DNA of 64,000 bases from Ginglymostoma cirratum (taxonomy: Eukaryota): the NCBI GenBank assembly GCA_024137785.1, contig JAHRHZ010000084.1, forward strand, positions 6,969,573 to 7,033,572, written 5' to 3'. Of the stretch, positions 7,437 to 63,608 are shown piece after piece (the first letter of the stretch is position 1; each line of letters begins with the position of its first letter). The notes below the pieces were generated by a model. The model did no database searches. It had not been told where the DNA came from and worked only from the letters and a program-made list of their open reading frames with translations. Both the position numbers and the translations under genes were made by a program.

Positions 7437-7494
7437 GGTCTGTCCCTCTAAATTTCTCTTTATTTAGAAAACATATAACTTTTTTTTGTAATAG

Positions 7495-7797
7495 CAGTCG
7501 ATGCTCTGGTTGAAGTTACCCAGACCCTTGAACATTACATTAAATTACTGGTGCAAGCATTGCATTCAACTGCACAATTTATGTATTTTCAAGACGAGAG
7601 GGATGTGGACAATTGTTAGTGGGAACTTGGGAAAAACGGAATTATGCAGCCAAATCAGATAACAGGATAAGATTTTTCATTGAAAAGTGAACAACCTCCA
7701 TCCAACCTTTGAATGTCAATATCCAGGAGTCTGGGGTCTGTCATTGAGGAGTGACTTGACTGGGAAGAAAGAACAGGGTCGCAGATTTAAGTGAATC
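7495..7797 (+). pseudogene. Decayed Ig V-domain exon, paralog of gene A V exon
   Basis: After acceptor ttttttttgtaatag|CAG, translation across frameshifts gives VDALVEVTQTLEHYIK / ITGASIAFNCTI / FQDERDVDNC*WELGK / SDNRIRFFIEK*TTSIQPLNVNIQESGVCH*GVT / ERTGSQI*VN. This aligns with gene A V (VTEMP..GGNVTWAC..FQDVTCVTVRWWKQGK..DGRKRF..STFQLLNITFQDSGVYHC..GTGSKLIVH). Multiple stops, frameshifts and no GT donor. Confidence 0.8.
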
Positions 7798-8084
7798 AAC
7801 GCTTGTCTTCCGTGGTAGGAGAATTGTAAAGAGCGTAGCCAGTACAGCCTCACACGCATTCCACTGAACACAAGCAGAGCATTTAACCCCTCTCACCACG
7901 ACTTGTACCCGTGTACCAAGGAGCAGAACTGACTTTACTCGCACAAGTCCTTGAGCTGTGAATTTATCTCTCAACTCTAATTTGCACTGTGCCATTGTGC
8001 ACGTAGCTCAGGTGACGTGCTGAGGTCGTGACGTTGTTGTAGATTCTACCTGTCAATTCTGATCCTAAGTTGCACATTCACTAT

Positions 8085-11000: not shown

Positions 11001-14000
11001 CCTTGAGATACCACTTGTAGTAATACTAACATTTATCTCTACCAGTGAAACTATGGACTTTTGATCTCTTGTTTGTTTCCTGTTTCATCACATGCAGAGC
11101 TATTTTTAAATGCTGTCTAGTCAACTCACCCCCTTTATTTAATATCTGCCTAAAATTTGACACGTAGCCCAAATGATTATGAGTTAATTCACAAATCAAT
11201 GTTTGACTTCTGACATCAATTTTAATCTGTGAGGACTAGAAATTTGGTCAAAGGGAAATCCTCAAGTCGTAAAGAAAATGGAGATCTCATTGGAGATTGA
11301 TAAGATGGTTTATGACAGGTTATAAGAAAAGTAACCCACGATGGGGAGGAGCAGTAAAAATAACGCAGAAGTTTTCACTGCTATAAAGTAGGACACGTGA
11401 AGTTGCAGCGTTGGTTGTTTGAAAAATAAAACGCACTGTGCAATTGGATATTGTCAAACGGAATAAGGGTTTAGACACTGTAGATTCTGAATCCCAACTC
11501 ACCATTTTTTCTTAATTAATTTAGATGGTTCTCTCATCTCGTGTTCAAAAACAACATCAAATAGACACAATGTAGTTGAATCATTCCGTGCATGGCTACT
11601 TGCAAATGGTAAAAATGGAATTCCTTTATTCCAATCTTCTGAAGATTCTTGACTATAGGCCCTCAACATGGTCTTTAACGTTTTATGCCACCGTTCTAGA
11701 TCTCCCTGAAATTCTGGGTGGTACACAGTTGATTTAAATCATTGTACTCTTCTTAAGCTATTCATAATTTCCTTGAATAACTTTGACATAAGATTTTAGC
11801 CTGGATTATGTTATTTTCTGTGGGTAGTCCGTATCTTGTAAAAAAAATTGAATAACTCATCAATAACATTTAGTGTGATACTGTATAATGGAGGAACCTC
11901 TTGAAATCTTGCAGATATATACATTATACACAAGAAATACTGATTCCAACTTTTCTGTTTTAGTGAGTGTTCCTAAACAATCGATTAAAATTCTTGCAAG
12001 CGATTCCTCGGTTGTTGGAATACATATCATGAGCACTAGTTTTAACACTGATGGAGGTTTTCCTACAATCTGACATGCGTGAATCATCTGAAATAAGTCA
12101 ACCACATCTTAATACAGTCCAAGGCAATAAAAATGTTTTATTTTGTATCTTAGCTTGAGTTTTTCTTACTTCAAAATGGCATCCTTCTAGCGTCTCATGT
12201 ATTATCAACAACACCTTCTTTCAAGAAGCCGTCAGTAATACAATCTGATGAACTTCTTCCCAATTTTCATCCGCCTGAGTAAGTAATGGTCTCCATTTCC
12301 TCAACAAGATTTCATTTTTAAGATGGTTACATTCTGGAATGCACTTAGATTAATCTTCTGTGTATGTTTTACGATCTCCTGTATCAACCTGTGACTTTGC
12401 GAGTTGTTACCACATAGACAGGAAAAAAGTTGTAGTATATACTTCAGTAATGAGTAGTTTGTCTGAATTTCCATTGTCCTTTCAATCTCAAAAGTCATTA
12501 CTCTTATCTGTGATCCAGTTATATCACTACCAACGATAACCAGTATTTCCAAAACAAGGAATTACTCTGTTACTCCAACTGCCACTTAACTGCTTTTCAC
12601 CAGACTCTCAAACCTCACCTTATATTATGGGGAATACATTTCTCACCATAAATTCCACATATTACTACCTTTTCTAGCAATGCACCCTCTCAATAACATA
12701 TTTCCTCATCTCTCACCATCAAAGTTTGACATACTCCTATATATCTCAATTTTTTTGTTGTTGTTGTTCTTGTTTTACCTGCTTCCCTTGGCACACATGA
12801 GTAAACCTTAATCGAACAAAGAAATTCTTTAAAGATATCTGGCACCTCCTTCCAACCATTCCTTGACCAGACTGTGCATTATTTTCTACATGTTTATTTT
12901 CAACTGTGCTGTCATTTGCTAAACCCTTATTCCGTTTGACAATATCCAATTGCACAATGCGTTTTATTTTTCAAACAACCAACGCTGCAACTTCACGTGT
13001 CCTACTTTATAGCAGTGAAAACTTCTGCGTTATTTTTACTGCTCCTCCCCATCGTGGGTTACTTTTCTTATAACCTGTCATAAACCATCTTATCAATCTC
13101 CAATGAGATCTCCATTTTCTTTACGACTTGAGGATTTCCCTTTGACCAAATTTCTAGTCCTCACAGATTAAAATTGATGTCAGAAGTCAAACATTGATTT
13201 GTGAATTAACTCATAATCATTTTTGTTGTTGGTGCAAATCTTTCAATTGTAATTCTCTGCTCTTCCAACTGAGTTCTCACTACTTCGGATTGTGAATTTT
13301 GAACACTTCCAGAAGAACAGTATCTCTAAGGGTACAATTTGTCTGATCAATTTTCAATGCCCTCGCACACCTATGAAATTAAGTTTTGATTGACACTTTT
13401 AAAATTCTATGTGGGTCTGACCAAGTTCTTTCTTTAGAGTGGAAAAATGCTGTCTGTATACTTCTGGCACGAAATCATAAGTACTTTAAATAGCTTTTAT
13501 TCACCTCAGTGTACTCCCTCTATACTGAGTAAGGGTCACCAATCCTGAAACGTGAACTCCATTTTTTCTTCACAGATGATGCCAGACCTGTTGAGCTTTT
13601 TCAGAAACTTCTGTTATTCTTCCCCAGATACTGCCTCTGATAGTGATGCAAACACGTCATTAACTCTCCTAACCAACTTTGTTTCAATCAACAATTCCCA
13701 CGTGGCCATTGGCGTTTCATTTGCTTAGCCACATTCTCAAATGAAATGAAAAAAAAAAGGCTTCTATGCCCTTCGTGTCGAACGTTGATAATGCTTGAGC
13801 ATATTTAAACAGATCCACACCAGGCCATTGGCTACGATGGGTTTTCTCTTCACCACTGTATTCTTCACTGTTCCAACCTTTTACTTTCTCCTCCACCCTA
13901 CTAAGTCTTTTCTTTTCAGTGCCCACTTCCGAAGTTCAAAATCTTTATTTTTGTGGTCTCTTCTGCTTGGATTATTCTTTCTATCTTATTTTCCCTTACC

Positions 14001-16278: not shown

Positions 16279-19200
16279 CTGCAAGATTAATATTTCGAAT
16301 TGATGTTAATGACCCGTTGTCCAAGACTTGGTGACTATGTTCAGTCATTAAAAAAAAGGATCAAGAAGCAAGAGTAAAGTGGACATAGTCCCTGAAGACT
16401 GCTCTCTCATGAGAGGGAGGGGCAACTGATAGTGGTTTAACCTGAGGGTTACCAATTCTCAGGAACGTTCAAGATGGTGAGAATTGCATAGTCACTTCAG
16501 CCATTGCAATGTTGGTATCCTCAGCATTGCAAACAGGCTGCCCAGCCAACTGAGCTAAGGAACCCCTGACTTAGGTGCAACACAAAGCGGAACCCATGCT
16601 TATCGTTTTTGCATGATTGTTAATCACAACTGTGATTTTTTTTTTCTGATCTGTTTATCAAGCTTACCCGACCATACACGGTTCTCTCATCGTCATGACT
16701 ACTAGTTGGACTTTTTCTGGGTTTGTTCACTTCTACTGCAGAATAATGCACGTCCTCAGCCAATTCTCTCTGAATGGACCAGAAAGGCATAAAATGCTTA
16801 GCTTTATGGCAACTTTGTTGGCATCAGCAACTTACGCACTGCTGAACAAACATGGGACAGATTAAGTTCAACTGGAAATGAATTGCACAAGCTTGAATTC
16901 ATTCGACTAACATAAAGTAAAATGTTAACACAATATGGACACTAGAACTAAAATTTAAACTTGCTCCCTTCTATTTAACAGCAATATTATTAAAAACATG
17001 TGTTTCAATGGAAACTTTTGGCACATGGAAAGATACAATTGATGTTTAAAGATTCTTATCTATGCTCTATTCGCAAAGAAAAAGGCAATTTACTTATTAG
17101 TTATACAGCATTGTTTTCTTTTAATTCAACGCACTGTTTCATAAGAGCACGTCTAACCATCGCTTTTAATGACATATTTTGGTTGGATAAGTGTTTTCAG
17201 TAATTAGAGTTAACGGGATTTTGACATGATTATGAAATAAAATTTCATGACATTAAATTTTAGTTACATTTTGAATAAGTCAGAATGAGCATGTTAACAT
17301 ACCGACACTTCACGGCGGTTTGATCCAGTTAAATAATCTTCTTTATCTATAAATTAATAAGGTTTAGTGTTGTTTAAGGGTTTCCTTATCAACTCAGTTT
17401 ATACACCATTGAATGCAAAGCTAATTGTCAGTCAGAAAAAAGCAAAGAGAAAGAGTCTCAAGTTCCACATTGTGCTGGTAGCATTTGAATTGCCAGCCCT
17501 TGGCGAGAAAACAGTGTATGGTGAGGGAATTTTGTTTCCCGCTTAGATGCTGGGCGCTTCAAACAGTATGGGGAATTTCAGCTGTGGAGATGATTCTGAC
17601 CTCCTGTGCCCGGAAATCAGGCTTAAGAGTCTATTCGGCCATCTATACAGTTGTTACACCGTCGGGATTTTTTACTCTTCAATTAATACTTGTTTGTTCT
17701 TCTACACAAAATGTGTGATCATATGTTCGTTTGCCAAGGTACATTTCATTCATCATGCTGAAAATGGGCATTAATAAAAACTGCTTTTTTGTACAGGAAG
17801 TTGCGCACTCTTGCAATATAGATTCATTTTAAAACAATTGAGACCTAATGGAAGCAAAAGTAATGTGATTTTCAATATTAAATACTATTCGAGGTTTCCC
17901 TCCCCGGTGTTCGAAAGAGAGGCTCTCCTAAATCTTATTCTTAAATCTTTGAATAAACTCAAGGTTTTGCAAGACTTACATTCGTTATTCTGCAGTCGAC
18001 CTCTCCTGCTAATGGCGATTATTGGTACCAAAAAAATCATTCCAATCACCACACATCCAGGCAGCCAGAAATAAAGTGAATTAACGACATTGTCTATAGA
18101 AGTAAGATGAACATTAATCATAGTGGACTTTAGCAAAACTTAGTATCCAAGATTTATTGTTTTAACTAAGATGCTAACTTTAATAAATCTAATTTGGACC
18201 AGACCAAAAGCCCTCAAAATTTTGTGAAGATATTCAAGACCATAACTTAGTCTTATTTAAAGATAAATGTAAGGTGTTGTGTTCCAGATGCAACTCGATT
18301 GGTCAAACTATTGGATTTCAAGCAAAATACACTTTATTCATTGACTATAGTTAAAATACAACAAAAGAAGGGAGGAAATTAAATAACTTACCTCCATTGG
18401 GAAACTCAACAGAACAATAGATGCACAAACTATTGTTCTTTTACTGTTACAATGTAGCAACATTCCATAAACACACTCATGGCAAAAGACAAAATCAGAA
18501 AATTGATGAAATTCCCACAGCCGGAATTAACCCATAACTTTTGCCTGCAGCCAAGAGGGAAAAAAAAACAAAGCTTCCACTTCTTCAAGACTTCAACAGT
18601 AGCTGCTGAAAGATAAAACTAAAACTGCTTGTTCTGTGTGAGCTTGACCACGCCCATTCAGGCTGCTTTTATTTTTCCAACTTGCACTGGCCTGAGAAAC
18701 TGTTTAAAATCTCTCTGAATAAAAGGCAGGATAAATCTTTTAAAGCTACAACATCGTCACAACTCAACGTTATGAAAGCCATAACAAGTGTGTCTATAAA
18801 CATTTTTGATATGATATTTGAACAACCTCTTCACTTCTCTTGAATATTTTAGATTAATCTGTGCAGTGGAAATTAAGCATTTTCAAATACTATTGTAGAA
18901 ACCTGAAATGAAAAACCATCCTATGATAATAAGGCATGTCCTTATTCTGAACTTGTTTGCCTGTTAGCATATTTGGCGCCATTTTCACAATAATTTGTGC
19001 ACTGCTTCTATAGCATTCTAGATTTCAGGAGACATATTGCTAGAGAATCTCTGCAAATCTAATCGCATCCGTGAGTAGAAAACACCATGAACGATTTGAC
19101 ACCAGTGGTCCTTGTTCTGAACTATGTTATCCCTTTTTTCCTCCACATATACTGCCAGATCTGCTGAGTTTCTCCAGCAACTACTGATTTTTTTTGTTTT

Positions 19201-22200
19201 CAGACCTCCCGTATCCGCATTTCTTTGTTACGTTTTGCCCTGGATTTCCGGAATTGGTTAAAAATGCCCTTTCAGTTATCTGTGGTTATTATTTGTGCTT
19301 ACCACTGAATAGTAAATAGGACCAATGGGTATTCAGCTCATTTAGGTTGTATCTGTGGCGGTAAAGATTTATCAATAGGATGAGGTACAGTGCAAACTGC
19401 ACTGTAGTCAGCCTGATGGTATATATTTTCATAATATTGTGAAAGACAGCTGACTCAGATACTCTGTAAATGGGTGAAGGGCGAATTTGGCCAGTCGACC
19501 AATTTCAGCACTCTAAATTAGAAGCAGCTGAAAGTAGATTACATGAGCAAAGGCTGTGATGTAGCATAGTATTGTCATCGGAGATAATGGTTTAAGATGG
19601 GGGTAAAAAGGAGAGCAACTGACATGTCAACGTGCCTCATGTCAGTGGCAATGAACAATATTTCATTAACAGAGAAATAGGTTGCCATGGTGAATGAGCA
19701 GTTAGCAATGCTGTTGCACAGCACCAGGGACCCGGCTTCAATTTCAGACTCAGGCAACTGCCTGTATGGAACTTTCGTATTTTTCCCCGTGTCTGCGTGG
19801 GTTTCCTTCAGTGACCTCCTACAGTGCAAAAAGTGTGGGTTAGGTCTATTGTCTGTGCTAAATCACCAATAGTTTCCAGGGATACATAGATTAGGTGGAT
19901 TAGTCACGGGGGCTACAAAGAGAGGGTAGGGGATTAGTCTGGGTGTGTTGCTCTTCAGAGAATTAGCGGGGACTTGTTGGGCTAAATGGCCTGTTTCCAC
20001 ACTGTAGGTATTCTGAGGAAGAAACTAATTTTTTTTCACTAGAAACACAAGAGTACATATGTTGGGATATAAAAATGTAACTACTGATTTAATTGGATGT
20101 ACAGAATGTCAATATTGGAAACAATATGAGTTATCTGGGAGAATTTAATTGACAAGTAATGTAACTTAGATCTAAACATGCCATAATCAGTTTTGTAAAT
20201 ATCAACATATGAATTTAATGTTTTCTCATATATTTCCCATGGCGTGTCATTATACTAATGTCTTGAGCATTAATCTGTACTAAAGTTACAAATAGCATTT
20301 TACTGAAAGAGACAGTGACTGCTTTTTCTATTGGCCTCAGAAACTCATACCTTCGTTGAATTTAGTAACAGTATAGGTGACAACAGCTGGGATCTTGAGA
20401 GACATGTGAGATACCATACAGGTATAGTTGTCTTCCGTTTGTTTCACGTCAGATAAAATGCTGGAAACCTTATATAGTCCATCAGTGCTCTTCTCTATGG
20501 TGTTGTGTGCTTCTAATCCAGTTTCAGCGCCATTTTTATACCAAGTTAGGCTGAAGTTCTGTGGAAAAAATGGTGCTGTTTCACACACAAGATTCAAAGA
20601 CACAGTTGAATTTCCTTCAGATGGCCTGGAGACAATCTTAAGTGGGGTTGGTGGAACTGCAAAATAAATAATAAATGAATCAAGTTGAGTCATTGGACAC
20701 ATTTGGAACAAATTTAATTCGTACTTACTTTACAGTGTTGCTGAAGAAACTGATTACCTTTCCTTTAAATGTTAATGAGGCCATCTGCACCTATCTCACA
20801 GACACCGAAATCTGGACAGTGTACCCGAACTATCAAACCTACTCATTGAGTTACTCAGAAGACAGAAACACAGAATTATTACAAGGTAAAATATAGGCGA
20901 TGCCGACCACTGCACCTATTGGTCAAATGAACATTTCACTCAATGAGAGACACCTGTCTTCGGCTGTAATCATGCACATAGTCCTTTACAGAAAATAGCC
21001 TTTTGAATGATTGTGTTCGTGTCCACATAGATGTCAACGACATGGAAGGAGTAAAGAAAACTTCTGCTGAGGGAAGTTGAGCAGCAAGAATTGCATTAAG
21101 AAGCCCCATTAACAAGAAGTTAAAAAGCATAACGTTCCGTATGCTATCTGTATCACGAATGATTTGTCCTACGTTAAATTTGATGAGAACATGATATAAA
21201 GGTCGCAAAAATTGGTGTATTAGACATAGTTTTGATTCATAAGACACTGTCACTAGAAATGATGGAAGTGGAGGAGTGATACTGGGGGCAGTCTTCTTCT
21301 GAATCATGCCAGTGTCTGTGTTCTGGCGAGTTGCATCTGTAGATCAGTACAGCAAGATTGCAAATAAATGGTGCTGCTGGGAAATCTTAGGGAAAAAATC
21401 TTGACAATAGAACACAATGCAAGAGAACATCGGAGCATGAAAGGGTATAATGATCAGACAGCGGCAGGAAGGCACAGCTTCTGCAAAACTAAATGCGCAT
21501 TTGAGTCTGTCGGTTAGGCCACAGGTTTCAAAAATAGAAAAAGGACAGATCGAAAGGTTCTGTACCTGAATGCTATTAACGTTTGGTCAAAAACAGACAC
21601 GCTGAATATGCAAATATAAATAAATATGCCTGACTTGATAGTCATTTTAGAGACCTGCTTGCAAGATGATGATGTCTTAGATCTGAATATCCAAGAGTGC
21701 AAGTTTTTGTGGAAATGATGGAAGTGTAGTTTTTTTTATTAAAAGATAGCAATAGTACTGTGAGGACGGATCACATTGTTTGGACTCTCAAGATGTAGAA
21801 TTAATTTGAATGTAGATGAGAAGTTGAAAGGAAATGTCTTGTAGGGAGACCCACTGTCAGCGATCATACTGCAGGTCGTGGTGTATGTAAATATGGTAAT
21901 AGAGGCTTGACTTAAAGATACTCCAATAATCTGGATTTATGTGGACTTGCATATAGATTGGGTGAATAAAGTTTGCAGAGATAGCCTATAAATTAGTTAA
22001 TTGAGTACTTATAACGATAGTCCTTCGAACAATATGTTCTGGAGCCAATCAGGTAGCGTGCTACTTGGCATAAGATGATGGTCAATTGAGTAGAATTGAT
22101 CAATTAAATCATAGAGAGGGCATTCCCCAGTAGCAAGAATCATAATATAATTGAATCTAATATTAATTTTGGAGGAAAAAATACAACTTTTAGATTGTGT

Positions 22201-25200
22201 TTCAAACTTCAATAAGTTCAATTATGAGGCATTAATCTTTAAAAAAAAGTTTGAATGAATACTACAAACAATATATCATTCAAGGATATGGGACAAATGG
22301 AGGAACTTGGGATTCACAAACTTCAAGTGTGTCAGTTCGGTTGATAATTAGACTCGATGGGCTGAAGGAAATTTTTTGTTCAATATGAATCTATGTGTCC
22401 ACGATGACAGATATTGCTAATGTGGAGAGAAAAATTGTGTTACAAGACATATCAATGAAGTTACAATGACTGAAGGAGTACATTCCAGTAGGAACTATTG
22501 TCTCCAGTGGAGAGAAGGACAGTCCATAATTAACTAAGGAAACTAATCATGGTATAAACGTGGAAGCAAAAGACCATCATTTCACAAAGACGAGTGACAA
22601 GTCAGGGGGTTGGTCAGAAAAAAATAACAGCTAAGAATAACTAAAATATTCCTGAGGAATATTTGATAGCAAGACTTTTTTACAGGTGTTTAATAAAGGA
22701 TAGGGACAAGGTAAACCTTGGTCCTTAAAGCAGTAAGTCTATGAAATTAATAATGAATCAAACTGAACTGGTCGATGATTCAAGTGCATATTTTGTGTTA
22801 TCTTCCCTGTAGAGGAGACAATTAAAACCTCAGAGCTGATTATGAATGAGGTGGTGATATTCGTGGTGAAACCTAAAGCAGTTACATTCACTCAAGGAAG
22901 TGTATGGAGAAAATTGATAGATCTAAATCCTAATAATTCCACGTGTTCTAAACAAACACATCCTTAAAAAGTGGGTATTGAAATAATAGAGGCGTATGGT
23001 CTTGAATTCTAAAATTTGCTGGAGTCCAGGATAGCCCACCAAATTGTAGAATTGCGAATGAAATTTGTTCATTCAAGAAAATTATGAGAAAGAAAGCAGG
23101 AACCTGTTGTCAGTTAGCTTCAAATCCATCTCTGGGAAAACAGTGGATTTTTTATGGAGTATGTACCAAAACATTTATAAAATTCCTGTGCCATCAGGCA
23201 GAGTCAGTAAGTTTATTTTTAAAGGACATCCTGTTTGACTAATTTAATATAATTTTATGAAGAAATAGCAAGCAAAGTGAATAATGGAGTATCTGTGGAT
23301 GTACTGTACTTAGTTTTCCACAATGCATTCAACCAGGTATCAAGAAAAGGATAGTGTGCAAGGTAAAATTCTGTTGCAGGGAATAATAACAAGTTGAAAA
23401 ATGAATTCTGTAGATAACAGGGACGGGACAGAAAGGCAGAAATGAGCCATTTTCATGCTTTCAACCTGTAATGAATTTAGTATCACAGGAATCAGAATTC
23501 TGGACAAAAAAAATGCATATGCTATATAGATGATTCGTGTGCAGAAAACTAACACCTAATTTTAAAATTTGTTGTTTGATACAAGGATATGTGCAAGATA
23601 AAAAAAAAGGTAAAATATAAATGGTAAAAAAAATTCTAGGAAGTGATAATTTAATTCAATGGGCAAAGCATTGCAAATCGAGAGCAAGGTAGCAAAAATA
23701 TGAGCTTGCACACTTTTGTAGAAAGGATGTCTGAAATGAAATTGGATTTATAAGGAAGATATTGCAGATTTCCCAAGTACACAGTGATATAGCTGGCCTG
23801 ATACATGAATCAGACAGATTTAGTATGACACAGTGATGGCCTGTTTCCGCGCTGCAAATTTCTATGACTCTACAAGAAAAACAAATGGAATATTGTCGTT
23901 TATTGCAAGGGGAAAATAATATAAAAGCAGAAATGCTCTGTTGCATTTGTACAGAACTTTGATAAGATTCCATCTAAAGCACATAATTTTGGTTTTATTA
24001 TCTATGAAGGGACAGAAGGTTTAAAGACAAATTATGAAAGGCATTCTATTGTTACAGGAAATGAGGATTTTTTCTGAGTAAAGTTAGGGCATGCTGGGCC
24101 TGGATCCATTTCAGACATATAAGGTCCTGCGAGGATTTGACAAGATGGATGCAAAAACGATGCTCCATCTTGTGCGAGAGACTAAAACTAGAAGGCAACG
24201 TTTAAATGACTGTGACGTTTGCATTATAATGGAGTGAAAGGGGATTATATTGTCTCAGAGAATCATGAGTTTTTGACACTGCATTCCCCAACGATACACG
24301 AAGATTTCTAAATATTTTAAAGTTAAAGGTAAATATATTCCTGACTAACAAACAAGTAAAATTGATTTGAGTAGGTGGGAATGTGCAATTGACGCCTGCA
24401 TTAGATCTGTTCCGATTATACTGAATATCAGAAGGGGCTCAACGGGCCAAATGACCTTTTGTCCATCCGAATTTGCATGTTCTTTTGAACTTGTCTCCAC
24501 TAAAATGCCAGATAATGCATTCCAGAACTGAAATACGCATTGCACTTACACGTTTCTATCATATAACTTTTAGTTATTTTGTTAATTACAAATCTGATTG
24601 TCTTGAATTCGATGTCTCGACAAATGAGAAACGTTTCTCCCTAGCATTTTGCCTAGAGATCTGCAGATTTTGAAAACCTTTATCAAATCTCATCTGAGTA
24701 TTTTTTTCCATAAAGTCTTCAACCTATCTTTGTACTTGATATCTGCAGTCATGGAACCATTCTCAGGAATCCTTCCTGCACTTTCCCAAAAATGCTCACA
24801 TCCTTCCAAAAGCACGGTACCTAAAACTAGGCACAATACTATTTATTTTCTATCTTCTCTTTATGTTCTATCTTTCAAAATGAATGATTTTATGATTCTT
24901 TGCACTGACCTCCATCTGCCATTGGCCTGTCACTCCCTGTTTTTGATGGAGTAACTAACAATTTTGTCTAAAATTAATGATTTAGAAGTCACCCACCATC
25001 AATTTTAAATTGACTGATTTGCAGTTATCCTATTTTCAGACATTATTTGGGGAAGAATATAATGTTTAAAACTGTCCAGTTCTTAGTCACCAATCGAGTG
25101 TAAGGAAGATGTATAAATTATTGCCAGCGAATACACAACTTTTACTCTCATATCACTAGTAGCCTTGGATGCATGTCAATCTGTCCTTGTGTATTTTAAC

Positions 25201-27002
25201 GCCAAGGGACAGATAGCCTCCCTAACTTCCACATTTCTCGTTAATGGTCGGTATTTTTTTTTCTCTTTCACAATAGCTCAAGTTGTTTATTTCTCTGGTA
25301 AAGAGAAAAGCAAAGTATTTGAAATCATATCGCACTTATTCCATTCACCTCTGAGTGAAAATTCTTTTGCTGATCCTTAATATTGTCTATCTTTTATGCT
25401 ATGGGACCTTTATAATCATTTGCGCACTTTTGGAATGATTTGAGATTCCGCTTTGCGTTAAAACCCAATCTCTTTTCGTGCTTTCTTTTCTTCTCATGTT
25501 AACTTTTTCAGTTTAGCTCTGGAGGTTTTATATTTAATGTCATTCTCGATTGTATTTTCTAACTTGAAGCTGACAGGTTGCAACAATTGAAGTCGAGTGC
25601 TTTTCATAATCTAAAAACATAAATAAAACTTGGAAGCAATCTGTGTGCTTCCATATTTCAGGCACAGATAGATGATAACGAGGAATTTGTTGTTAAAACA
25701 AAAGTCTCTGGTCCGGATGAGATGAATTTGACAATCAGATTACAAATGGTGAAATATCATGTGCATATAAAGAAAAGAGGACTAGGCCACATCGTCTTTC
25801 AAATTGTTTTTACGTTGATTTATGAGGGGACAACGATGTATGCTTTAGAAAATGGGCTAAGAATCTGAATTTACTGGAAATTCACGAAAGACATTTCAGT
25901 TCGTCACTTCCTTGAAGTGCGTCCCAGACATTAGCGATTATACCCAAGATTCATACTTTACATTTAGAGTTCGATTCTAATTGCCTGTATTGAGACGTGT
26001 GACATTGAATGTCTAAGTAGCTCTTTTGTTTCAAAATATCCTCATTTATGATTGATATGCTCCCTACTATTGGGCTGTTCGTTTGTTCTGCACTTACCAT
26101 GAACAATTAGCTTTGACCCAGTTCCATTTCCTTGAATGATTCCATGACACATCACTGTACAGTGATAGACTCCAGAGTCTTGGAAAGTTATATTCAGCAG
26201 CTGGAAAGTACTGTACCATTTTGTTTCCAGACCAAATCGTTTTCTGCCATCGCCACTGTCTTGCACGTATTCAGATTTGCCCTGTTTCCACCAGCGCACG
26301 GTAACGCAGGTTACATCTTGGAAGATCGAAAATCTGCACGCCCAGGTAACGTTTCCTCCTTTGGTTACAGTCACTTCTTTGGGCATTTCGGTCACTCTGG
26401 ACGAAGTGCCGTCTGAAGCTGTCAAGAATAGTGTCAATTACAGGCTAATTATTTTACACATCGCGCGTTGAACTAAGAGAGAAGGGAACGGGCATGGATA
26501 AAGAGGAAATAAACTGTAATAAATTGATTTACATAGATATTTACAGCAGCTGGTACCCCTCGCTGTCTCTGAACCAAATGCTCCGCATTGGTGTCAATTC
26601 TGGACTTGATGACTAAAGAAGGCACATTCAAAAATGGCTGTACTTGTTTATCATCAACCCGCAAAACATTCCAAAGCGTTTATATCAGGCGGTAAGAGCG
26701 GGAGCATTTCCTGCTCAGCCATGATTGACTTGGACTTGCGCCCCTCGGATTAGACAGTATGGCCATCGGCGGGCGTGGTGTTTGAGGATAAAGTCTGTGA
26801 TTCGAAAAAGGACGTAAGACTCGGATTTCTACCCCATGGGTCACTAGGCTTGGAAAGATAAAGATAGAGAAAGCAAAAAACAGATTTACCTCGCCGTTAT
26901 TTCGGAAGTAGTTCGCAAGTTACCTGGGGTAATCAATAAGAACCTACCTGCGGGAATTATCCTGTGGAGAATCAGGCACAACAGAATCAGACACACTGAC
27001 AT
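16258..27002 (-). CDS. Gene A: non-rearranging V(J)-C1-TM IgSF receptor with ITIM and ITSM (SIRP-like / VJ-C1 type inhibitory receptor), 320 aa; join(26948-27002, 26098-26418, 20351-20656, 17980-18093, 17303-17346, 16668-16769, 16258-16278)
   Basis: All introns GT-AG with compatible phases (1,1,1,1,0,0); 55+321+306+114+44+102+21 = 963 nt open frame. Signal peptide, V-set, C1-set, hydrophobic TM and tyrosine motifs occur in the expected order. Confidence 0.85.
16668..16769 (-). CDS. Gene A exon 6: ITIM/ITSM exon RELAEDVHYSAVEVNKPRKSPTSSHDDERTVYGR
   Basis: Acceptor cctttctggtccattcag|AGA, donor CGG|GTAAGC; 102 nt, phase 0-0. VHYSAV fits the ITIM consensus; TVYGR plus I or V fits ITSM TxYxxI/V. 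Confidence 0.82.
17303..17346 (-). CDS. Gene A exon 5: short cytoplasmic exon (Y)KEDYLTGSNRREVS
   Basis: Acceptor ttattaatttatag|AT, donor TCG|GTATGT; 44 nt, phase 1 to 0, which is exactly what is needed to join the TM exon to the ITIM exon in frame. Confidence 0.72.
17980..18093 (-). CDS. Gene A exon 4: transmembrane exon DNVVNSLYFWLPGCVVIGMIFLVPIIAISRRGRLQNNE
   Basis: Acceptor cttacttctatag|AC, donor GAAT|GTAAGT; 114 nt, phase 1-1; uncharged hydrophobic stretch followed by RRGR stop-transfer. Confidence 0.9.
18190..18761 (-). mobile_element. Solo-LTR-like element in gene A intron 3
   Basis: Similar to 8090-8370 (ttggaccagacc.., gtgttgtgttccagatgcaactcgattgg, tagttaaaatacaacaaaagaa); begins TGTGACGATGT on the minus strand. 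Confidence 0.5.
19681..20015 (+). mobile_element. tRNA-derived SINE (shark HE1-like), decayed
   Basis: tRNA-like head (gttagcaatgctgttgcacagcaccagggacccggcttcaatt), ccccgtgtctgcgtgggtttcc core, and CR1-like tail ggcctgtttccacactgtagg. Confidence 0.8.
20351..20656 (-). CDS. Gene A exon 3: Ig C1-set domain
   Basis: Acceptor tattttgcag|TT, donor GAAG|GTATGA. Motifs: LVCETAPFFPQNFSLTWYKNG, DGLYKVSSIL, YTCMVSH. Confidence 0.95.
21400..24450 (+). mobile_element. Old, highly decayed CR1 LINE (endonuclease through RT)
   Basis: Residual RT-like DNA motifs (catcctgtttgactaattta; gtggatgtactgtacttagttttccacaatgcattc); no open frame. Confidence 0.6.
24450..25560 (-). mobile_element. Decayed CR1 fragments in antisense
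   Basis: Antisense CR1-like segments (actgattgcagttatcc..; ttgccagcgaatacacaact..); boundaries approximate. Confidence 0.45.
26098..26418 (-). CDS. Gene A exon 2: Ig V-set domain with germline J-like G strand
   Basis: Acceptor ttcttgacag|CT, donor CATG|GTAAGT. Motifs: VTEMP, GGNVTWAC (B-Cys), VRWWKQ (C-Trp), FQLLNITFQDSGVYHC (F-Cys), GNGTGSKLIV (G strand). Confidence 0.95.
26948..27002 (-). CDS. Gene A exon 1: signal peptide MSVCLILLCLILHRIIPA
   Basis: ATG at 27002; hydrophobic 18 codons plus 1 nt; donor CAG|GTAGGT (phase 1); 529 nt upstream of the V exon. Confidence 0.88.
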
Positions 27003-30220: not shown

Positions 30221-31715
30221 TGTTGAAGGGAGGAGATAGGTCAGTCCAGGGAGGACGGACAGGTCAAGGGGACGGGATGAGGTTCGTGGACAGGAGATGG
30301 GGGTGGGGCTTGAGGTGGGAGGAGGGAATGGGTGAGAGGAAGAACAGGTTAGGGAGGCGGGGACGCGCTGGGCTGGTTTTGGGATGCGGATGGGGGAGGG
30401 GAGATTTTGAAGCTTGTGAAATCCACATTGATGCCATTGGGCTGCAGGGTTCCCAGGCTGAATATGATTTGCTGTTCCCGCAGCCTTCGGGTGGCATCAT
30501 TGTGGCATTGTAGGAGGCCCAGGATGGACATGTCGTCTGAGGAATGGGAGGGGGAGTTGAAATGGTTCGCGACTGGGAGGTGCAGTTGTTTGTTGCGAAC
30601 TGAGCCAAGGTGTTGGGCAAAGCGGTTCCCAAGCCTCCGCTTGGTTTCCCCGATGTAGAGGAGGCCACAACGGGTACAGCGGACCCCGCAATGGTCGAGA
30701 ACGCCCTCGACCGTGTCTCCCGCACTTCCCACAACTCATCCCTCACACTCCGTCCCCGCAATAATAACCAAAAAAGAATCCCCCTCTTCCTGACGTACCA
30801 CCCCACCAACCTCCGGATCCAACGCATCATCCTCCGACTTTTCCACCATCTGCAATCCGACCCCACCACCAAAGACATTTTTCCCTCCCCACCCTTGTCT
30901 GCTTTCCGGAGGGACCATTCCCTCCGTGACTCCCTTGTCCGCTTCACACTCACCTCGAGCCCCACAACACCCGGCACTTTTTCCTGCAACCGCAGGAAGA
31001 GCTACACCTGCCCCCACACCTCCTCCCTCACCCCAATCCCAGGCCCCAAGAAGACTTTCCGCATCAAGCAGATGTTCACCTGCACATCTGCCAATGTGGT
31101 ATACTGCATCCGTTGTTCCCTTTGTGGCCTCCTCTACATCGGGGAAACCAAGCGGAGGCTTGGGGACCACTTTGCAGAACACCTGCGCTCAGTTCGCAAC
31201 AAACGACTGCACCTTCCAATCGCGAACCATTTCAACTCCCCCTCCCATTCCTCAGACGACATGTCCGTCCTGGGCCTCCTGCAATGCCACAATGATGCCA
31301 CCCGAAGGCTGCAGGAGCAGCAAATCATATTCTGCCTAGGAACCCTGCAGCCCAATGGCATCAATGTGGATTTCACAAGCTTCAAAATCTCCCCTCCCCC
31401 AGCCGCATCCCAAAACCAGCCCAGCTCGTCCCCGCCTCCCTAACCTGTTCTTCCTCTCACCTATCCCCTCCTCCCACATCAAGCCCCACCCCCATCTCCT
31501 ATCCACTAACCTCATCCCGCCCCCTTGACCTGTCCGTCCTCCCTGGACTGACGTATCTCCTCCCTACCCCCCCACCTGCACTCACCTTTACAGGTTCCAC
31601 CCCCGCCTCTTTGACTTGTCTGCCTCCTCTCCACCTGTCCTCTCCTCTATCCATCTTTTATCCGCCTCCCCCTCTCTCCCTATTTATTTCAGAACCCTCT
31701 TCCCCTCCCCCATTT

Positions 31716-58600: not shown

Positions 58601-61600
58601 ATTTCTGAATGGAGGGCTGCGACTGGTGGCAAGCCTCAGGGATCAGTTTTGGGACCTTTGCTATTTGTAATATATATATATAGATGATTTGGAGGAAAAT
58701 GTAACTGGTTTGATAAGTAATTTTGCGGATGACATAACAGTTGGTGGATTTGTGGATAGTGAAGAGGACCACCAGAGGATACAGCAGGATATAGATCGGT
58801 TGGTGACTGGAGCAGAGATATGGTAAATGGAGTTTAATCTGGAAAAATGTGAGGTAATGCGTTTTGGAAGGCCAGTCCAGGTGGAAAATATACAGTAAAT
58901 GGCAGAACCCTTAACAGTACTGATAGGCAGAGCGATCTGTGTATACAGGTACACAGGTGGCAAGGCATGTGGAGAAGGTAGTCTTCATCAGCCAGGGCAT
59001 TGAGTTTAAAAATTGGCAGGTAATATTGCAGCTTGATAGAAGCTTAGTTAGGCAGCAATTATGCCACCAATTTTGATGTTGTTCTGCAACCATGCCTTCT
59101 ATTATTTCATCCAAATCATTTGCATAAATAACAAACAAAAGAAGACCCAGAACAGATCCTTGATCACTGCTGGTGACAGGCCGCCAGTCCAAAAAAAAAC
59201 CCTCCACCACCACTATCTACCTCCTGTTGTTAAGCAAATTATGAATCCAATTGGCAATCTCACTGTGACTGTCACGTGACCGAACTTTCCTGATTAGTCT
59301 ACCATTTAGAAGCTTGTTGAAGGCTTTACTCAAGTTGAAATTGACAACATCTACTGCTCTACCTTCATCAATCTTTTTAGTAACTTCCTCAAAAAACTCA
59401 ATCAAGTTTGTAAGACATGATTTTCCTTGCACAAAACCATGCTGACTATCGCTAATCAACTTTTGCCTCTCTAAATGTCCATCAATCCCATCTTTTAAAA
59501 TCACCCCTCACAATTTACCCACAACCAAAATCAGATTCACAGGTCTATAGTTCGCTGGTTTCTCCTTACAACCTTAGTTAAACAGAGGTATAACATTAGC
59601 CAGCCTCCAATCATCTGGACCTCACCTATAGTTACAGGCGATGCAAATATTTCTGCAAGGGGTTTCACAATTTCCTCCCTTATGCCCCACAATATTCTGG
59701 GATACATTAGATTAGGTCTTAGAGATTTATCCATCTTTAATATTCTCTAAAACCTCCAGAACATCCTCTTCTGTAATGTGAACTTCTAAATTTATCTCCC
59801 TGCCTTCTTTAGCTTCAGTTTCTTTCTCCACAGTAACACCTTTCAACATGTTGCCATTGTGTATTTGCATTACCCATTGATGTTAAATCGAGAACTTCAA
59901 CATTAATGGAACTAGATGGCTACCATACCTTGACGTTTACAACATTTACAACACATGACCAGTGCCATAATAATCAGAAGTAGTGAAGATACTGCTACAC
60001 AGATGTAGATCCAACAAGAAAAAGATTCGCTGAAACCAGAATCTGCGAGAAACACACAAATATCAAAAAGGTATTTAAATTTGTTTTCCTTCTAATGATA
60101 TATTAGAATAACAGACGGTTACTTAACTCTAAGATCCTAGGTTATTCTGATGGCACGTTACAGATGATACTGTGAAGTTAAGTTGGCTGTACAATAACAG
60201 CATGGTGGGCTTCACATCCAACATTCCAAAGTGGGCCATAACAGTACTTCAAACGTATAAAATTACTCAATACGTACCTTAGGTGGGGGTTGGAACATTT
60301 GAACGCAGTTCCTAATTGGTGTAGGCCAAAACTATCTACAGTTTGGTTCAGAATAGCAATAGGTTTCTAATATCAATTGAACAATCTATAAGAATAGAAG
60401 TAAAAAATTGGTGAATAGAATACTTTAATGATGGTGTTCCTCGACAGATGGAGGTAAGAATATTAAACACTGCATCTTATCCATGTCATATTTGACTTGG
60501 ATATATTTTATGCTCAAAAAGAAAAAAAGTTCTTCTCCAGAGCAATCATCTTTGTTCAGCGAGAATAAAATACCTTCAAAAATGGAACGTGCAAAAATAT
60601 TTGTATGATTAAAAAATAATACTGCTGGAAAATTGCATTTGCTATAAGCTAGCAAAAAAAAAATTATAATTTGTTTGTGAATACTTTTGCTCTCACTTCC
60701 AACGAAATTGCAAATATGTCAGCAGAGAACACAAGTACAGCTTCACTAGACGTTCTGAACAGAACAAATCTTGGAAATCTGATTTGTCACTTGAAATGTT
60801 ACTACAATGTGTTTCAGTCCAGCAGTAAATTTTCTTAACACATACTAGAGGAGTCAAATGTTACATTATTAATTATTTAAATAGAAAGCACATGATTAAT
60901 TTGGATCCATCATAATCTTTTTGCCCCATTTATCCTGCTGAATGAATTGACATATGTTATCTGTTACAACCTTGGGATTTTGAAAGTGCTTTACAGCTAG
61001 TTAAAACATTGAAACGTGCAGCCAATTTTTACACAGTAAAGGGCATAGTGGACAACTGAGCTCGGGCTAATTACACTGAAATATGAATTTTCATTCCACC
61101 ACAGCTAGAGAATTTTCATTCAATTAACTAATTAAACATAAAAATGACAACGTGGAGTAACTTCTGGATTGTCATAAAACCCCTGCTGGTTCACCGAAAC
61201 ATTTCAGAAAAGGAAATTCACCAATGTTTCCCAGTCTGCCAATATGTACACCTAGATTAATGTAGCTCATTCTTATCCTTCCAGTGTACCACGGGTAATT
61301 TGAAATAAGTATGGTCAGTGATATTCACATACTGTGAATGAAAAGCATGGTGACGCTTTGGCTCATTGTGTTCACCCCTCCAACTGTTGACTTTTGATCA
61401 CCACACACTGTCAGATCTGCCTAGAACTGCAGACCTTTCAGCCTTACATCTGTAGTTCGGGAAATGCTAGAATCAGAAAGTACATGATAAATGGACATTA
61501 AATAAAAATTCTCCGCTTGGTCGCAGTCACCATGGACAAATTTGTTGATTTTCTTTTTCTGAGAATGCTGGTAGCAAAATTGATAAAGGGGGAGTCAATG

Positions 61601-63471
61601 TGTGAACTACATTAGGATTTTCAGAAGGCTGCTCGTAAGGGAGCCCACAAACATTTAGTTCGAAAAATTCAAGCAAATGGCTCAGAACGTAATGCACTGG
61701 CATGGATTTAACATTAGTTTCAGTGTTCGCCTGTATAGGAAGAAGTGGGCTATTCTCTCATTAACAGACGTGACTAGTGGGGAACTACGGTCCAGCTGTT
61801 CACAATGCAAATCAATGATTTGGCTGTCTGTAGCCAAAGTAATTTTATTTTTCAAATTTGCAGGAGTGTGTGTTGAGAGAAAGATGTGAAATATTTCAGC
61901 AGGATTTGGTCAGGCTCTGATTGGGAAAGAATGTGCCGTGTGGAATAAAATGTGGAAAAACATCAGATTATCCACTTTAGCAGGAAGAACAGGTGTGCAC
62001 AGGTTTCCATAAAAACTGAGAGCTTGGAAAATATCGGTGTTCAAGGGTACCTAGCTGTCCTTGTCAATAAATCACTGAACATTAACATGCAGCTACAATA
62101 CGTTTGTAGGAAGGCAGAAAGAAAAATAAACATTAATGCAAGAGAATGTGCGCACAGTGGTAGTGAATCTTTGCTTAAATTATGAAAGAAATTAGTTCAA
62201 CTTATGGGTGAGTGATAAATGCTGGCCCAGCCAGCGACACAGTCATCTCATGAATGAATGAAGGAAAGTAAACAACACATGGAGTACCACGTGCAGTTTT
62301 GGTCTCATTCTGTCGGGAAGTTAATATTTCCATCATGGGAGAACAACAAAGAATCACCAGACTTGTTCCAGAATGGCTGGATTGTCTTATGAAAACAGAT
62401 TGGACAAACTGGGCCCATATTCCTTAGTGTTTCATACAAGAAGAGGTGATCTCATTGAAAACGACAAAATACTTAAAGGGATGGACAGTTGAGATGCAGA
62501 TGTTTCCCCTGACAGGGGAGTCTAGAATAAGGAGGCACAATTTAAAAACAAGAGGGATGCCACTTAGGTCTGAGATGAAGAGAAAACCACTTTTTTAAAC
62601 AGCAGTTGATTATCCATGGAAATCACCAGAACAGAGGACTGTGGAAGCTCAGTTTTTGAGTACGTAGACAGGGCGGCACGGTGTCTCAGTGGTTAGCACT
62701 GCTGACTCACACCCTTGGGTGACTGTCTGTGTGGAGTTTGCAGATGATCCCGCGTCTGCGTGGGTTTCCTCCGGGTTCTCCAGTTTATCCCACAGTCCAG
62801 ACATGTGCAGGTTCGGTGATTGGCCATATTAAATTGCCCATAGTGTTCAGGGATGTGTAGATTTGGTGGGTTTTCGGGGGATGGGTCTGGGTGGGATACT
62901 CCGAGGGTCGGTGTGAACTTGTTGGGCTGAAGGGCTTGTTTCGACACTGTATGGATTCTATGGTAATAAATTTCTTACTACATACAGAGTGGTGCGGGGA
63001 TGGGGTAGGGAGCTGATTTGGAAAGAAAATATGCATCTTGTTCTCTGGTTCAGGTTGGAACTAGGAACTTGTTGATCTTTCTGATATATTAGATTCTTTT
63101 TGAAAACAATTCCTACCAAATGCAGTAAACCCACAACATGCTCGATTTCACAACGAAATAAGTATTGTTCTTACCTGGAATGAGAACAGTGTAATTTACC
63201 CAGGTTGGATCCGTGAGAGTAGAGTGTGATACCTCACAGACATAAACAGTTCCAGTATGAGCTGGCTCTTCATCTGTCAGAAAACTGGTAACTTCATATA
63301 GTCCTTCAGCATTCTTAGTTCTGAATGTTTCTACTCCAGTTCCAACATTTTGACCATCTTTTCGCCAAGCAATAGTATAATTATCAGGATAGAACGCGGA
63401 CGTTTTACATATACATGTTAGAGAGCCATTTGCAGAAAATTCCGAAATAATCTTCAGAGGATGTGGAGAAG
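55534..63471 (-). CDS. Gene B (partial; leader and V lie beyond the window end): C1-TM-cytoplasmic IgSF receptor paralogous to gene A; join(63175-63471, 59929-60042, 55534-55688)
   Basis: Phase-1 GT-AG exons in the same order and orientation as gene A; the TM exon has the identical 114-nt length. Confidence 0.8.
57152..57179 (-). ncRNA. Minimal type I hammerhead core (intact)
   Basis: Minus strand CTGATGA-A-GGGT(ttag)GCCC-GAAA-C-GTC. Confidence 0.75.
57199..57598. other. Assembly gap (400 N)
   Basis: Run of N. Confidence 1.
57625..57652 (+). ncRNA. Minimal type I hammerhead core (intact)
   Basis: CTGATGA-A-GGGT(ttag)GCCC-GAAA-C-GTC. Confidence 0.75.
58350..59060 (+). mobile_element. CR1 RT fragment
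   Basis: cctcagggatcagttttgggacc (PQGSVLGP), ttttgcggatgac (FADD). Confidence 0.85.
59061..59840 (-). mobile_element. CR1 RT fragment, opposite orientation
   Basis: ORF 59217-59504 SQHGFVQGKSCLTNLIEFFEEVTKKIDEGRAVDVV..SKAFNK; ORF 58911-59213 QGSVLG. Confidence 0.9.
59929..60042 (-). CDS. Gene B transmembrane exon DSGFSESFSCWIYICVAVSSLLLIIMALVMCCKCCKRQ
   Basis: Acceptor tgtgtttctcgcag|AT, donor CAAG|GTATGG; 114 nt. Confidence 0.9.
61400..62668 (+). mobile_element. Decayed CR1 RT/3' region
   Basis: actgcagacctttcagccttacatctgtagttcgggaaatgctagaatc (NYRPVSLTSVVGKMLES-like); the 3' region resembles a CR1 ORF2 end. Confidence 0.75.
62669..62960 (+). mobile_element. HE1-like tRNA SINE
   Basis: gggcggcacggtgtctcagtggttagcactgctgactcac head, gtctgcgtgggtttcctccggg core. 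Confidence 0.88.
63175..63471 (-). CDS. Gene B C1-set exon
   Basis: Acceptor caattttcatag|CT, donor CCAG|GTAAGA; ASPHPLKII..LTCICKTSAFYPDNYTIAWRKDG..EGLYEVTSFL..YVCEVSH. Confidence 0.95.
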
Positions 63472-63608
63472 CTATGAAAATTGAAAAAAAAAAGGTTTTG
63501 TAATTTCCAAGAGTGCATTTACAATACATATCTTTGGGCTTTATCAATCATCAGTGTAGTTGTTCTTTATCTATTAACTGGTTTGAAGAATTTTTTGATA
63601 GGGTTGTG

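Follow-up and report, generated by a model that had tools for sequence, protein, structure and literature searches.

A compact VJ-type domain in a probable SIRP-like receptor gene of the shark Ginglymostoma cirratum

The window analysed here is a stretch of 64,000 nucleotides from the genome of the shark Ginglymostoma cirratum (GenBank assembly GCA_024137785.1, contig JAHRHZ010000084.1, positions 6,969,573 to 7,033,572 of the forward strand), and all coordinates below are those of the window. An exon on its minus strand, at 26098–26418, encodes a small immunoglobulin (Ig) domain of the variable (V) type, which an earlier note, made from the sequence alone, had described as resembling VNAR, the V domain of IgNAR. 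Very probably, the exon codes for the N-terminal domain, of VJ type, of a shark membrane receptor that is transcribed. The corresponding gene, referred to here as gene A, would consist of a leader exon, the V(J) exon, one C1 exon, a transmembrane exon and a tail exon carrying an immunoreceptor tyrosine-based inhibitory motif (ITIM) and an immunoreceptor tyrosine-based switch motif (ITSM), and would belong to a large SIRP-alpha-like family that extends across the chondrichthyans.

Exons of gene A and their transcripts

The V exon comprises 321 nucleotides (107 codons, phase 1-1; in-frame reading 26099–26419) and runs on the minus strand from 26418 to 26098, between the acceptor ttcttgacag/C and the donor G/gtaagt (the slash marks the splice site). 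Its product matches the Pfam V-set model with 29.7 bits over its full length (model positions 2–109 of 109, with 96 query residues standing for 108 model positions), Ig_3 with 30.8 bits and I-set with 25.5 bits (cut-off 23.7). The I-set match covers model positions 2–77 of 90 only, with 84 residues for 76 model positions and the G strand left unaligned. NCBIfam gave no match, as expected from a prokaryote-oriented library, and a word search with the V exon alone returned no candidate of 59–187 residues and was uninformative. Counted by hand as well as in the alignment, 58 residues lie between the canonical B- and F-strand cysteines, Cys28 (26336–26338) and Cys87 (26159–26161), in agreement with the count of the earlier note. 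The two extra cysteines that it had reported were likewise read from their codons, namely Cys38 (TGC, 26306–26308, minus strand) in the BC loop (..FQDVTC..) and Cys91 (TGT, 26147–26149, minus strand) in the FG loop (..YHCTVMC..), which is a short, fixed loop of 10 residues. The J-like G strand GNGTGSKLIV (26102–26131, minus strand) is located inside the same open exon as the V part. The motif G.G..L.V that it carries occurs three times in the six-frame translation, and is therefore specific only when combined with an Ig core. All five invariant residues of an alignment of 38 family sequences (alignment A1) are kept in gene A, together with nine of the ten near-invariant ones (the exception being Gln11, which is a Glu), and this conservation argues for a working domain.

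The leader exon (26948–27002, on the minus strand like all exons of gene A) starts with the ATG at 27000–27002 and encodes a hydrophobic signal peptide; it holds 18 codons and one base and ends at the donor G/gtaggt. Downstream of the V exon lies the C1-set exon (20351–20656; 306 nucleotides, phase 1-1), bordered by the acceptor ttttgcag/TT and the donor G/gtatga and scoring 44.6 bits against Pfam C1-set. Its best match among solved structures is human SIRP-alpha (2wng_A, 56.1 bits, E 3.8e-14), with SIRP-gamma also among the best. The stalk and transmembrane exon (..WLPGCVVIGMIFLVPIIAI SRRGR..) was placed at 17960–18093 from the sequence and from the alignment of homologues, and its 3' end is uncertain, at either 17980 (before a gtaagt) or approximately 17960 (where the homologues align). 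With the gtaagt at 17979 as donor, the end of this exon would be in phase 1, against phase 0 at the start of the ITIM exon. The homologues align past this gtaagt, and the phases of the two exons require a small extra exon or another donor. The cytoplasmic exon (16668–16769, putative boundaries) is open and carries, at motif level only, an ITIM-type VHYSAV and an ITSM-type TVYGRV; both motifs are intact, as is the transmembrane segment. All searches were made exon by exon, and not with the joined spliced protein.

Reads of public runs from the window's own species were aligned to positions 20560–26500. A contig of 944 nucleotides from run X1 spans 26098–26421 and a contig from run X2 spans 26098–26334, both with 0 differences. 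In the contigs of both runs (depth 31 in X1 and 20 in X2), the V exon is joined to the C1 exon at 26098/20656, by a GT..AG joint on the minus strand that skips 5441 bases. Past 26421, the contig ends of X1 and X2 are the reverse complement of the final bases of the leader exon. Since the spliced contigs show 0 differences, the leader, V and C1 exons are transcribed as read, and both extra Cys codons as well as the continuity of the V and J-like parts stand in the transcripts. Scattered X1 contigs of depth 2–6, mostly on the strand of the gene, were also observed in the V-C1 intron (21100–25060), and could be unspliced precursor or repeat-derived transcripts; the same intron contains an X1 joint on the opposite strand, at 22245/22324. 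Run X20 gave zero reads.

An alternative is that gene A is a decaying copy, in which case the peculiarities of its V domain would be early pseudogene noise. The window does contain a decayed V exon of this family (7491–7807), the near-invariant Gln11 has been replaced by Glu, and the phases of the transmembrane and ITIM exons do not close without a further small exon. Decay is nevertheless unlikely: the frames of the leader, V and C1 exons are open and their splice sites canonical, the contigs of two runs join these exons (depth 31 and 20), all invariant core residues are kept, and the transmembrane segment and the ITIM/ITSM motifs are intact.

The chondrichthyan family and its compact V domain

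With the V exon as query, phmmer found 177 proteins at E<=1e-3 among 1.84 billion representatives, 77 of them at E<=1e-10, with a best identity of 54%. Stored homologues used in two word searches, together with two cluster look-ups, supplied the names of the family members. The commonest source name is 'tyrosine-protein phosphatase non-receptor type substrate 1-like', which is equivalent to SIRP-alpha-like. Other names are 'signal-regulatory protein beta-1-like', 'tapasin-related protein-like' and 'natural cytotoxicity triggering receptor 3 ligand 1-like', and further ones include 'CD276 homolog', MHC class II beta-like and lambda light chain-like. Every row with a named organism comes from a cartilaginous fish, these being a chimaera (Callorhinchus), sharks (Heterodontus, Heptranchias, Scyliorhinus, Mustelus, Stegostoma and Chiloscyllium) and rays (Hypanus, Hemitrygon, Mobula, Narcine and Pristis). 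By V-domain sequence, the nearest relatives are P0153 (57% identity), P0152 and P0001 (54% each), and identities range from 48 to 57% over P0153, P0152, P0001, P0002 and P0151. An Atlas look-up with residues 19–125 of the homologue P0153 gave generic V-set clusters only ('putative antigen receptor (fragment)', CD22-like, CD200 and nectin). A maximum-likelihood tree was built by a quick method from 81 rows and 107 columns, after ten distant rows (P0139, P0116, P0124, P0117, P0122, P0088, P0119, P0126, P0099 and P0121) had been dropped from it and from the coupling analysis described below. Gene A groups with the family by its length, by all five invariant residues, by its J-like motif and by its position in this tree, within a clade of 10 rows (value of 96 in the Shimodaira–Hasegawa-like approximate likelihood ratio test, SH-aLRT). 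No published description of a chondrichthyan SIRP-like VJ-C1 family was found in the literature searched, subscription journals and supplements excepted.

The distance between the canonical cysteines was compared over 91 aligned V domains (the query and 90 others), only domains covering at least 85 of the 107 query positions having been taken. It is 58 residues in 48 of them, 53 in 22 and 51–59 in 16 more, and the remaining five, all of them distant rows, have 61–69. Alignment A1 is nearly without gaps, and V-set is matched by all of its 38 sequences and I-set by 36. The J-like motif G-x-G-[ST]-x-L-x-V is kept across the family, with G99, G101, L104 and V106 conserved in at least 90% of the 38 sequences. 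The profile of A1 aligns with the I-set domain Robo2 Ig4 over positions 13–90 (32.3 bits) with a single gap of 3 residues, located in the BC loop; the alignment with the V domain of PD-L1, a V-set domain, contains insertions of 7 and 4 residues between C' and E. As judged from these alignments, compactness is a trait of the whole family, whose C'-to-D segment appears truncated, and not of gene A alone, and the family V domain would join an I-set-like spacing to a V-type J-like G strand. 'VNAR-like' and 'I-set-like' are names for one and the same spacing. The earlier note had presented the domain of gene A as compact, and its argument from the C-to-D spacing stands: C' is short and only 17 residues lie between the C-strand Trp and the D-strand Arg-Phe, which is insufficient length for a C'' strand, so that this strand is probably missing. 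Compactness as a property of gene A itself does not stand, the spacing being that of I-set domains and common to the family. The J-like motif has an Asn at the position of the Phe/Trp of Ig and T-cell receptor (TCR) J segments; this Asn is near-invariant across the family and opens an N-G-T sequon within the G strand. We infer that it speaks against a pairing face of the VH-VL type.

With the SIRP family, gene A shares a V-type domain at the N-terminus whose J-like G strand is encoded in the same exon, an architecture of V-type domain, C1-set domain and transmembrane segment (the C1 domain being closest to SIRP-alpha and SIRP-gamma among solved structures), and a single-pass transmembrane segment followed by a tail with ITIM-type tyrosine motifs, which in gene A are seen at motif level. 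Both families also contain members with and without such tails, going by the source names SIRP-alpha-like and SIRP-beta-like. They differ in that gene A has one C1 domain whereas SIRP has two, and in that the V domain of gene A is shorter. The I-set domains of Robo (Ig4) and titin share the core spacing from the B to the F strand, and Pfam I-set scores above its cut-off, but gene A has a V-type J-like G strand, V-set is matched over its full length with a higher score, and the domain is N-terminal in an immune-type receptor of V-C1 structure. NKp30, another receptor with a VJ domain in one exon, is not known to have a C1 domain. UrIg, UrIg2 and NKp30 have in common with gene A this one-exon VJ domain, a split leader and the status of non-rearranging gene in cartilaginous fishes (as described in parts of PMC12227049), whereas gene A has one C1 domain, a transmembrane segment and an inhibitory-type tail. 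In the same parts of that source, the VJ domain of UrIg2 is followed by several C1-type domains. Membership of gene A in the UrIg/UrIg2 group was considered and rejected on architecture, since a single C1 exon stands between the V and transmembrane exons, against the many C domains described there (PMC12227049, in part). The chicken PRARP genes, likened here by description only, are also non-rearranging VJ-type genes of the immunoglobulin superfamily, according to their citation in a portion of PMC10751288.

By analogy with SIRP-alpha, and in view of the family's architecture, the V domain of gene A would bind a cell-surface or pathogen ligand via its BC and FG loops. The tail tyrosines, when phosphorylated, would recruit SH2-domain phosphatases and dampen activation, as in SIRP-alpha.

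Several points weigh against the reading of gene A as an expressed, SIRP-like inhibitory receptor. The kind of runs X1 and X2 is not recorded; they were taken as RNA from the GT..AG joint alone, and their contigs drop rare variants. In the polyA RNA run X19, about a quarter of which was read, zero reads fell on the exons. Read support is confined to the leader, V and C1 exons, and the tail exons are putative. Among the 60 matches listed for the V exon in the PDB there was no SIRP V domain, and what supports the designation 'SIRP-like' is the C1 domain, together with the architecture and source names. Finally, the absence of the C'' strand and the bond between the extra cysteines are argued from spacing and strand register only, and both the ligand and the recruitment of phosphatases are pure inference.

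Likeness to the IgNAR V domain

IgNAR V domains are assembled by RAG-mediated V-D-D-D-J joining of segments flanked by recombination signal sequences (RSSs), and are followed by the constant domains of IgNAR in a heavy-chain-only antibody. In gene A, a single germline exon holds the V part and the J-like part without interruption, and the transcript contigs are colinear with this exon at 0 differences. A scan of the 64 kb for the RSS consensus with a 12-base spacer gave one match (at 11413, with 1.03 expected) and none near the V exon, and the consensus with a 23-base spacer had no match in the 64 kb. The receptor encoded by gene A is non-rearranging. The earlier note had seen as much, describing a receptor V domain with a germline J-like strand and no RSS-flanked gap before GNGTGSKLIV, and both the scans and the contigs bear this out. 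The F-strand codons for His-Cys-Thr-Val (26153–26164) form a perfect palindrome of 12 bp, each half of which agrees with the RSS heptamer at six of its seven positions. It is found directly after the F-strand Cys codon, which is the position of RSSs in rearranging V genes, and the nonamer is absent; noticed post hoc, this palindrome is probably due to chance.

The comparison with VNAR consists here of scores and alignment ranges only. When the whole exon was searched against all PDB chain sequences, the best matches were Skint1 (28.1 bits), PD-L1 (24.7 bits), Fc-epsilon-RI alpha (24.4 bits), a single-chain variable fragment (scFv, 23.8 bits) and contactin-2 (23.1 bits). Among the 60 matches listed, the VNAR chain 4hgk_C is at rank 17 (21.8 bits, E 1.7e-3, query 4–106 to 17–121) and 4hgm_A at rank 29 (20.7 bits, E 3.9e-3, query 8–104 to 2–100), and chains of LRIG3 and CD79b score beside them. 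With residues 43–107, the site of the compaction, none of the 60 matches listed was a VNAR. Residues 1–48 gave no VNAR among 47 matches, the best being TCR V-beta, VSIG4, embigin and V-kappa, and these best matches indicate that the likeness to VNAR framework region 1 (FR1) comes from an xVTQxP pattern common to many V domains. The pseudo-exon N-terminus in which the earlier note had recognised VNAR FR1 belongs instead to a decayed V exon of gene A's own family. No VNAR was among the best 60 PDB matches of the A1 profile, which is weak evidence as whole-chain ranking favours multi-domain chains.

It could be envisaged that the V domain is a true relative of VNAR, with the VJ-C1 family descending from the cell-surface lineage proposed for VNAR and the deletion of C'' shared by inheritance. 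Parts of PMC4622739 describe VNAR as having 8 strands and not 10, through a deletion spanning framework region 2 and complementarity-determining region 2 (FR2-CDR2), and mention that an origin from a cell-surface receptor has been suggested, while parts of PMC8470474 describe it as I-set-like, with a short C' and a C'-D linker. These descriptions would fit such a kinship, as would the presence of both domains in cartilaginous fishes and the alignment of solved VNAR chains with gene A from end to end, with a net length difference of 2. CD79b, LRIG3 and a TCR V domain, however, align end to end at equal length too. The VNAR scores are under those of Skint1, PD-L1, Fc-epsilon-RI, scFv and contactin, VNAR is missing from the matches of both part searches and from those of the profile (the latter being a biased list), and gene A is a membrane receptor without RSSs in which a SIRP-like C1 domain comes next. 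We therefore consider this kinship very improbable. The same holds for the more far-reaching idea, which appears highly doubtful, that the family VJ domain is a surviving relative of the receptor domain ancestral to IgNAR V. The missing C''/CDR2 would then be inherited and not newly deleted, and gene A would illustrate that a staple between CDR1 and CDR3 can arise by two point changes.

Type II VNARs, whose CDR1 and CDR3 are linked by a disulfide, share with gene A a small V-type domain with no space for C''/CDR2, one extra cysteine in each of the CDR1 and CDR3 equivalents, and occurrence in cartilaginous fishes (for VNAR, parts of PMC4622739 and PMC8470474). They differ in that gene A is germline-joined, without RSSs or D segments, and has a short fixed FG loop; in that one SIRP-like C1 domain and then a transmembrane segment follow in gene A, the similarity being at the generic Ig level only; and in that the Cys pair is the private feature of one gene and not a feature of a class. 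Size apart, gene A shows none of the defining features of IgNAR V that were tested. Of the earlier suggestion that the domain is related to, or convergent with, IgNAR V, the specific link has not stood up, and convergence in size is tenable: the resemblance to VNAR would be one of size, without demonstrable kinship, and would reflect convergence on a small V/I-type fold.

The extra cysteine pair and the rest of the window

The loops holding Cys38 and Cys91 were compared over the 90 aligned relatives, and in 83 of these both loops are free of Cys. Three others carry one in the FG loop only (P0019, in the same column, P0117 and P0121) and three in the BC loop only (P0024, P0057 and P0119). A Cys in both loops is found in a single relative, P0099, which is a distant multi-domain protein of 1206 residues with 64 residues between its canonical cysteines. 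Both cysteines occur together in none of the 80 family rows kept for the tree, nor in any of 24 further domains from a third protein search and the cluster look-ups. In the closest relatives, the column of Cys38 holds a Trp and that of Cys91 an Arg; more precisely, the nine other members of the 10-row clade have Trp/Arg in six cases (a ray included), Lys/Tyr in two and Ser/Gly in one. The codon TGC is one base away from TGG (Trp), and TGT is one base away from CGT (Arg), the latter change being a CpG transition. By mutual information with average product correction, the two columns rank 454 of 5151 pairs (71 effective sequences, hence underpowered). The earlier note had proposed as a check that the pair might co-vary across paralogues. 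Given the lack of co-occurrence and the Trp/Arg of the closest relatives, the pair does not co-vary, and looks like two recent point substitutions. The protein libraries had been reduced to clusters at 50% and 90% identity, and none of the named proteins is from the window's own species, which means that close paralogues and orthologues lie outside this comparison. Among the relatives compared, the Cys pair is private to gene A and, judging from the codons, derives from Trp and Arg by one base change each.

There is about an even chance that Cys38 and Cys91 are bonded, in which case the bond would staple the BC loop to the FG loop. Both residues would lie on extensions of the neighbouring C and F strands, at one and the same end of the domain. 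The gain of an even number of new cysteines, in two flanking loops at the membrane-distal end of an extracellular domain, has the look of a new disulfide. The gene is moreover expressed and otherwise conserved, and a Cys in both loops of just one of the 90 other domains (P0099) indicates that chance co-occurrence is uncommon. Only a little short of even is the alternative that the two cysteines are not bonded to each other, and either arose recently as neutral substitutions, in a receptor gene that evolves fast, or serve as free thiols for bonding to another chain. This is what the single base change behind each of them (one being a CpG transition), the lack of any close relative carrying both, and the low coupling rank would lead one to expect. 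In the strand register of Ig structures, the C and F strands place the two positions diagonally and not directly opposite each other, a geometry that disfavours a disulfide, except where the strands are irregular. P0019 and its isoform P0162 carry a single Cys in the FG column of Cys91, which further shows that an unpaired Cys is tolerated there; this and the strand register count against the bond. Many family members also have a Cys in the last column of the V exon in A1 (..LTVC), where gene A and its closest relatives have a His. This odd third Cys could form an interchain bond, and its frequency suggests that unpaired cysteines are common in the family.

Other parts of the family are also represented in the window. 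The decayed V exon at 7491–7807, which is the pseudo-exon of the earlier note, lies on the plus strand, opposite to gene A, and was traced by tblastn with residues 145–247 of P0151 and with P0005. It contains in-frame stops and a frameshift, and its nearest matches are the second V domain of P0151 and P0179, the latter sharing its N-terminal motif; no C1 exon was found beside it by tblastn. On the minus strand at 63185–63472 there is a C1 exon of a neighbouring paralogue (C1-set 42.5 bits; 36–47% identical to family C1 domains), the V exon of which lies beyond the window end. The presence of this second receptor exon indicates that the receptors are clustered. Retroelement-derived open reading frames were noticed as well: GIY-YIG-like repeats surround an N gap at 30260–31450, and a reverse-transcriptase-like stretch is found on the plus strand at 58707–58850. 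The latter also matches part of the predicted protein P0041, whose annotation may include transposon sequence.

For the question of how the small V domain of IgNAR arose, a non-rearranging shark receptor of the same size would be a natural candidate relative, a lead that here fails by sequence. Cysteine staples between CDR1 and CDR3 also occur in some camelid VHH domains. What the window points to is a set of SIRP-like receptors present across the chondrichthyans, with a truncated domain intermediate between the V and I types and a J-like strand, and an expressed member of this set with a possible CDR1-CDR3 staple that would have been gained by two single-base changes, in parallel to type II VNAR.

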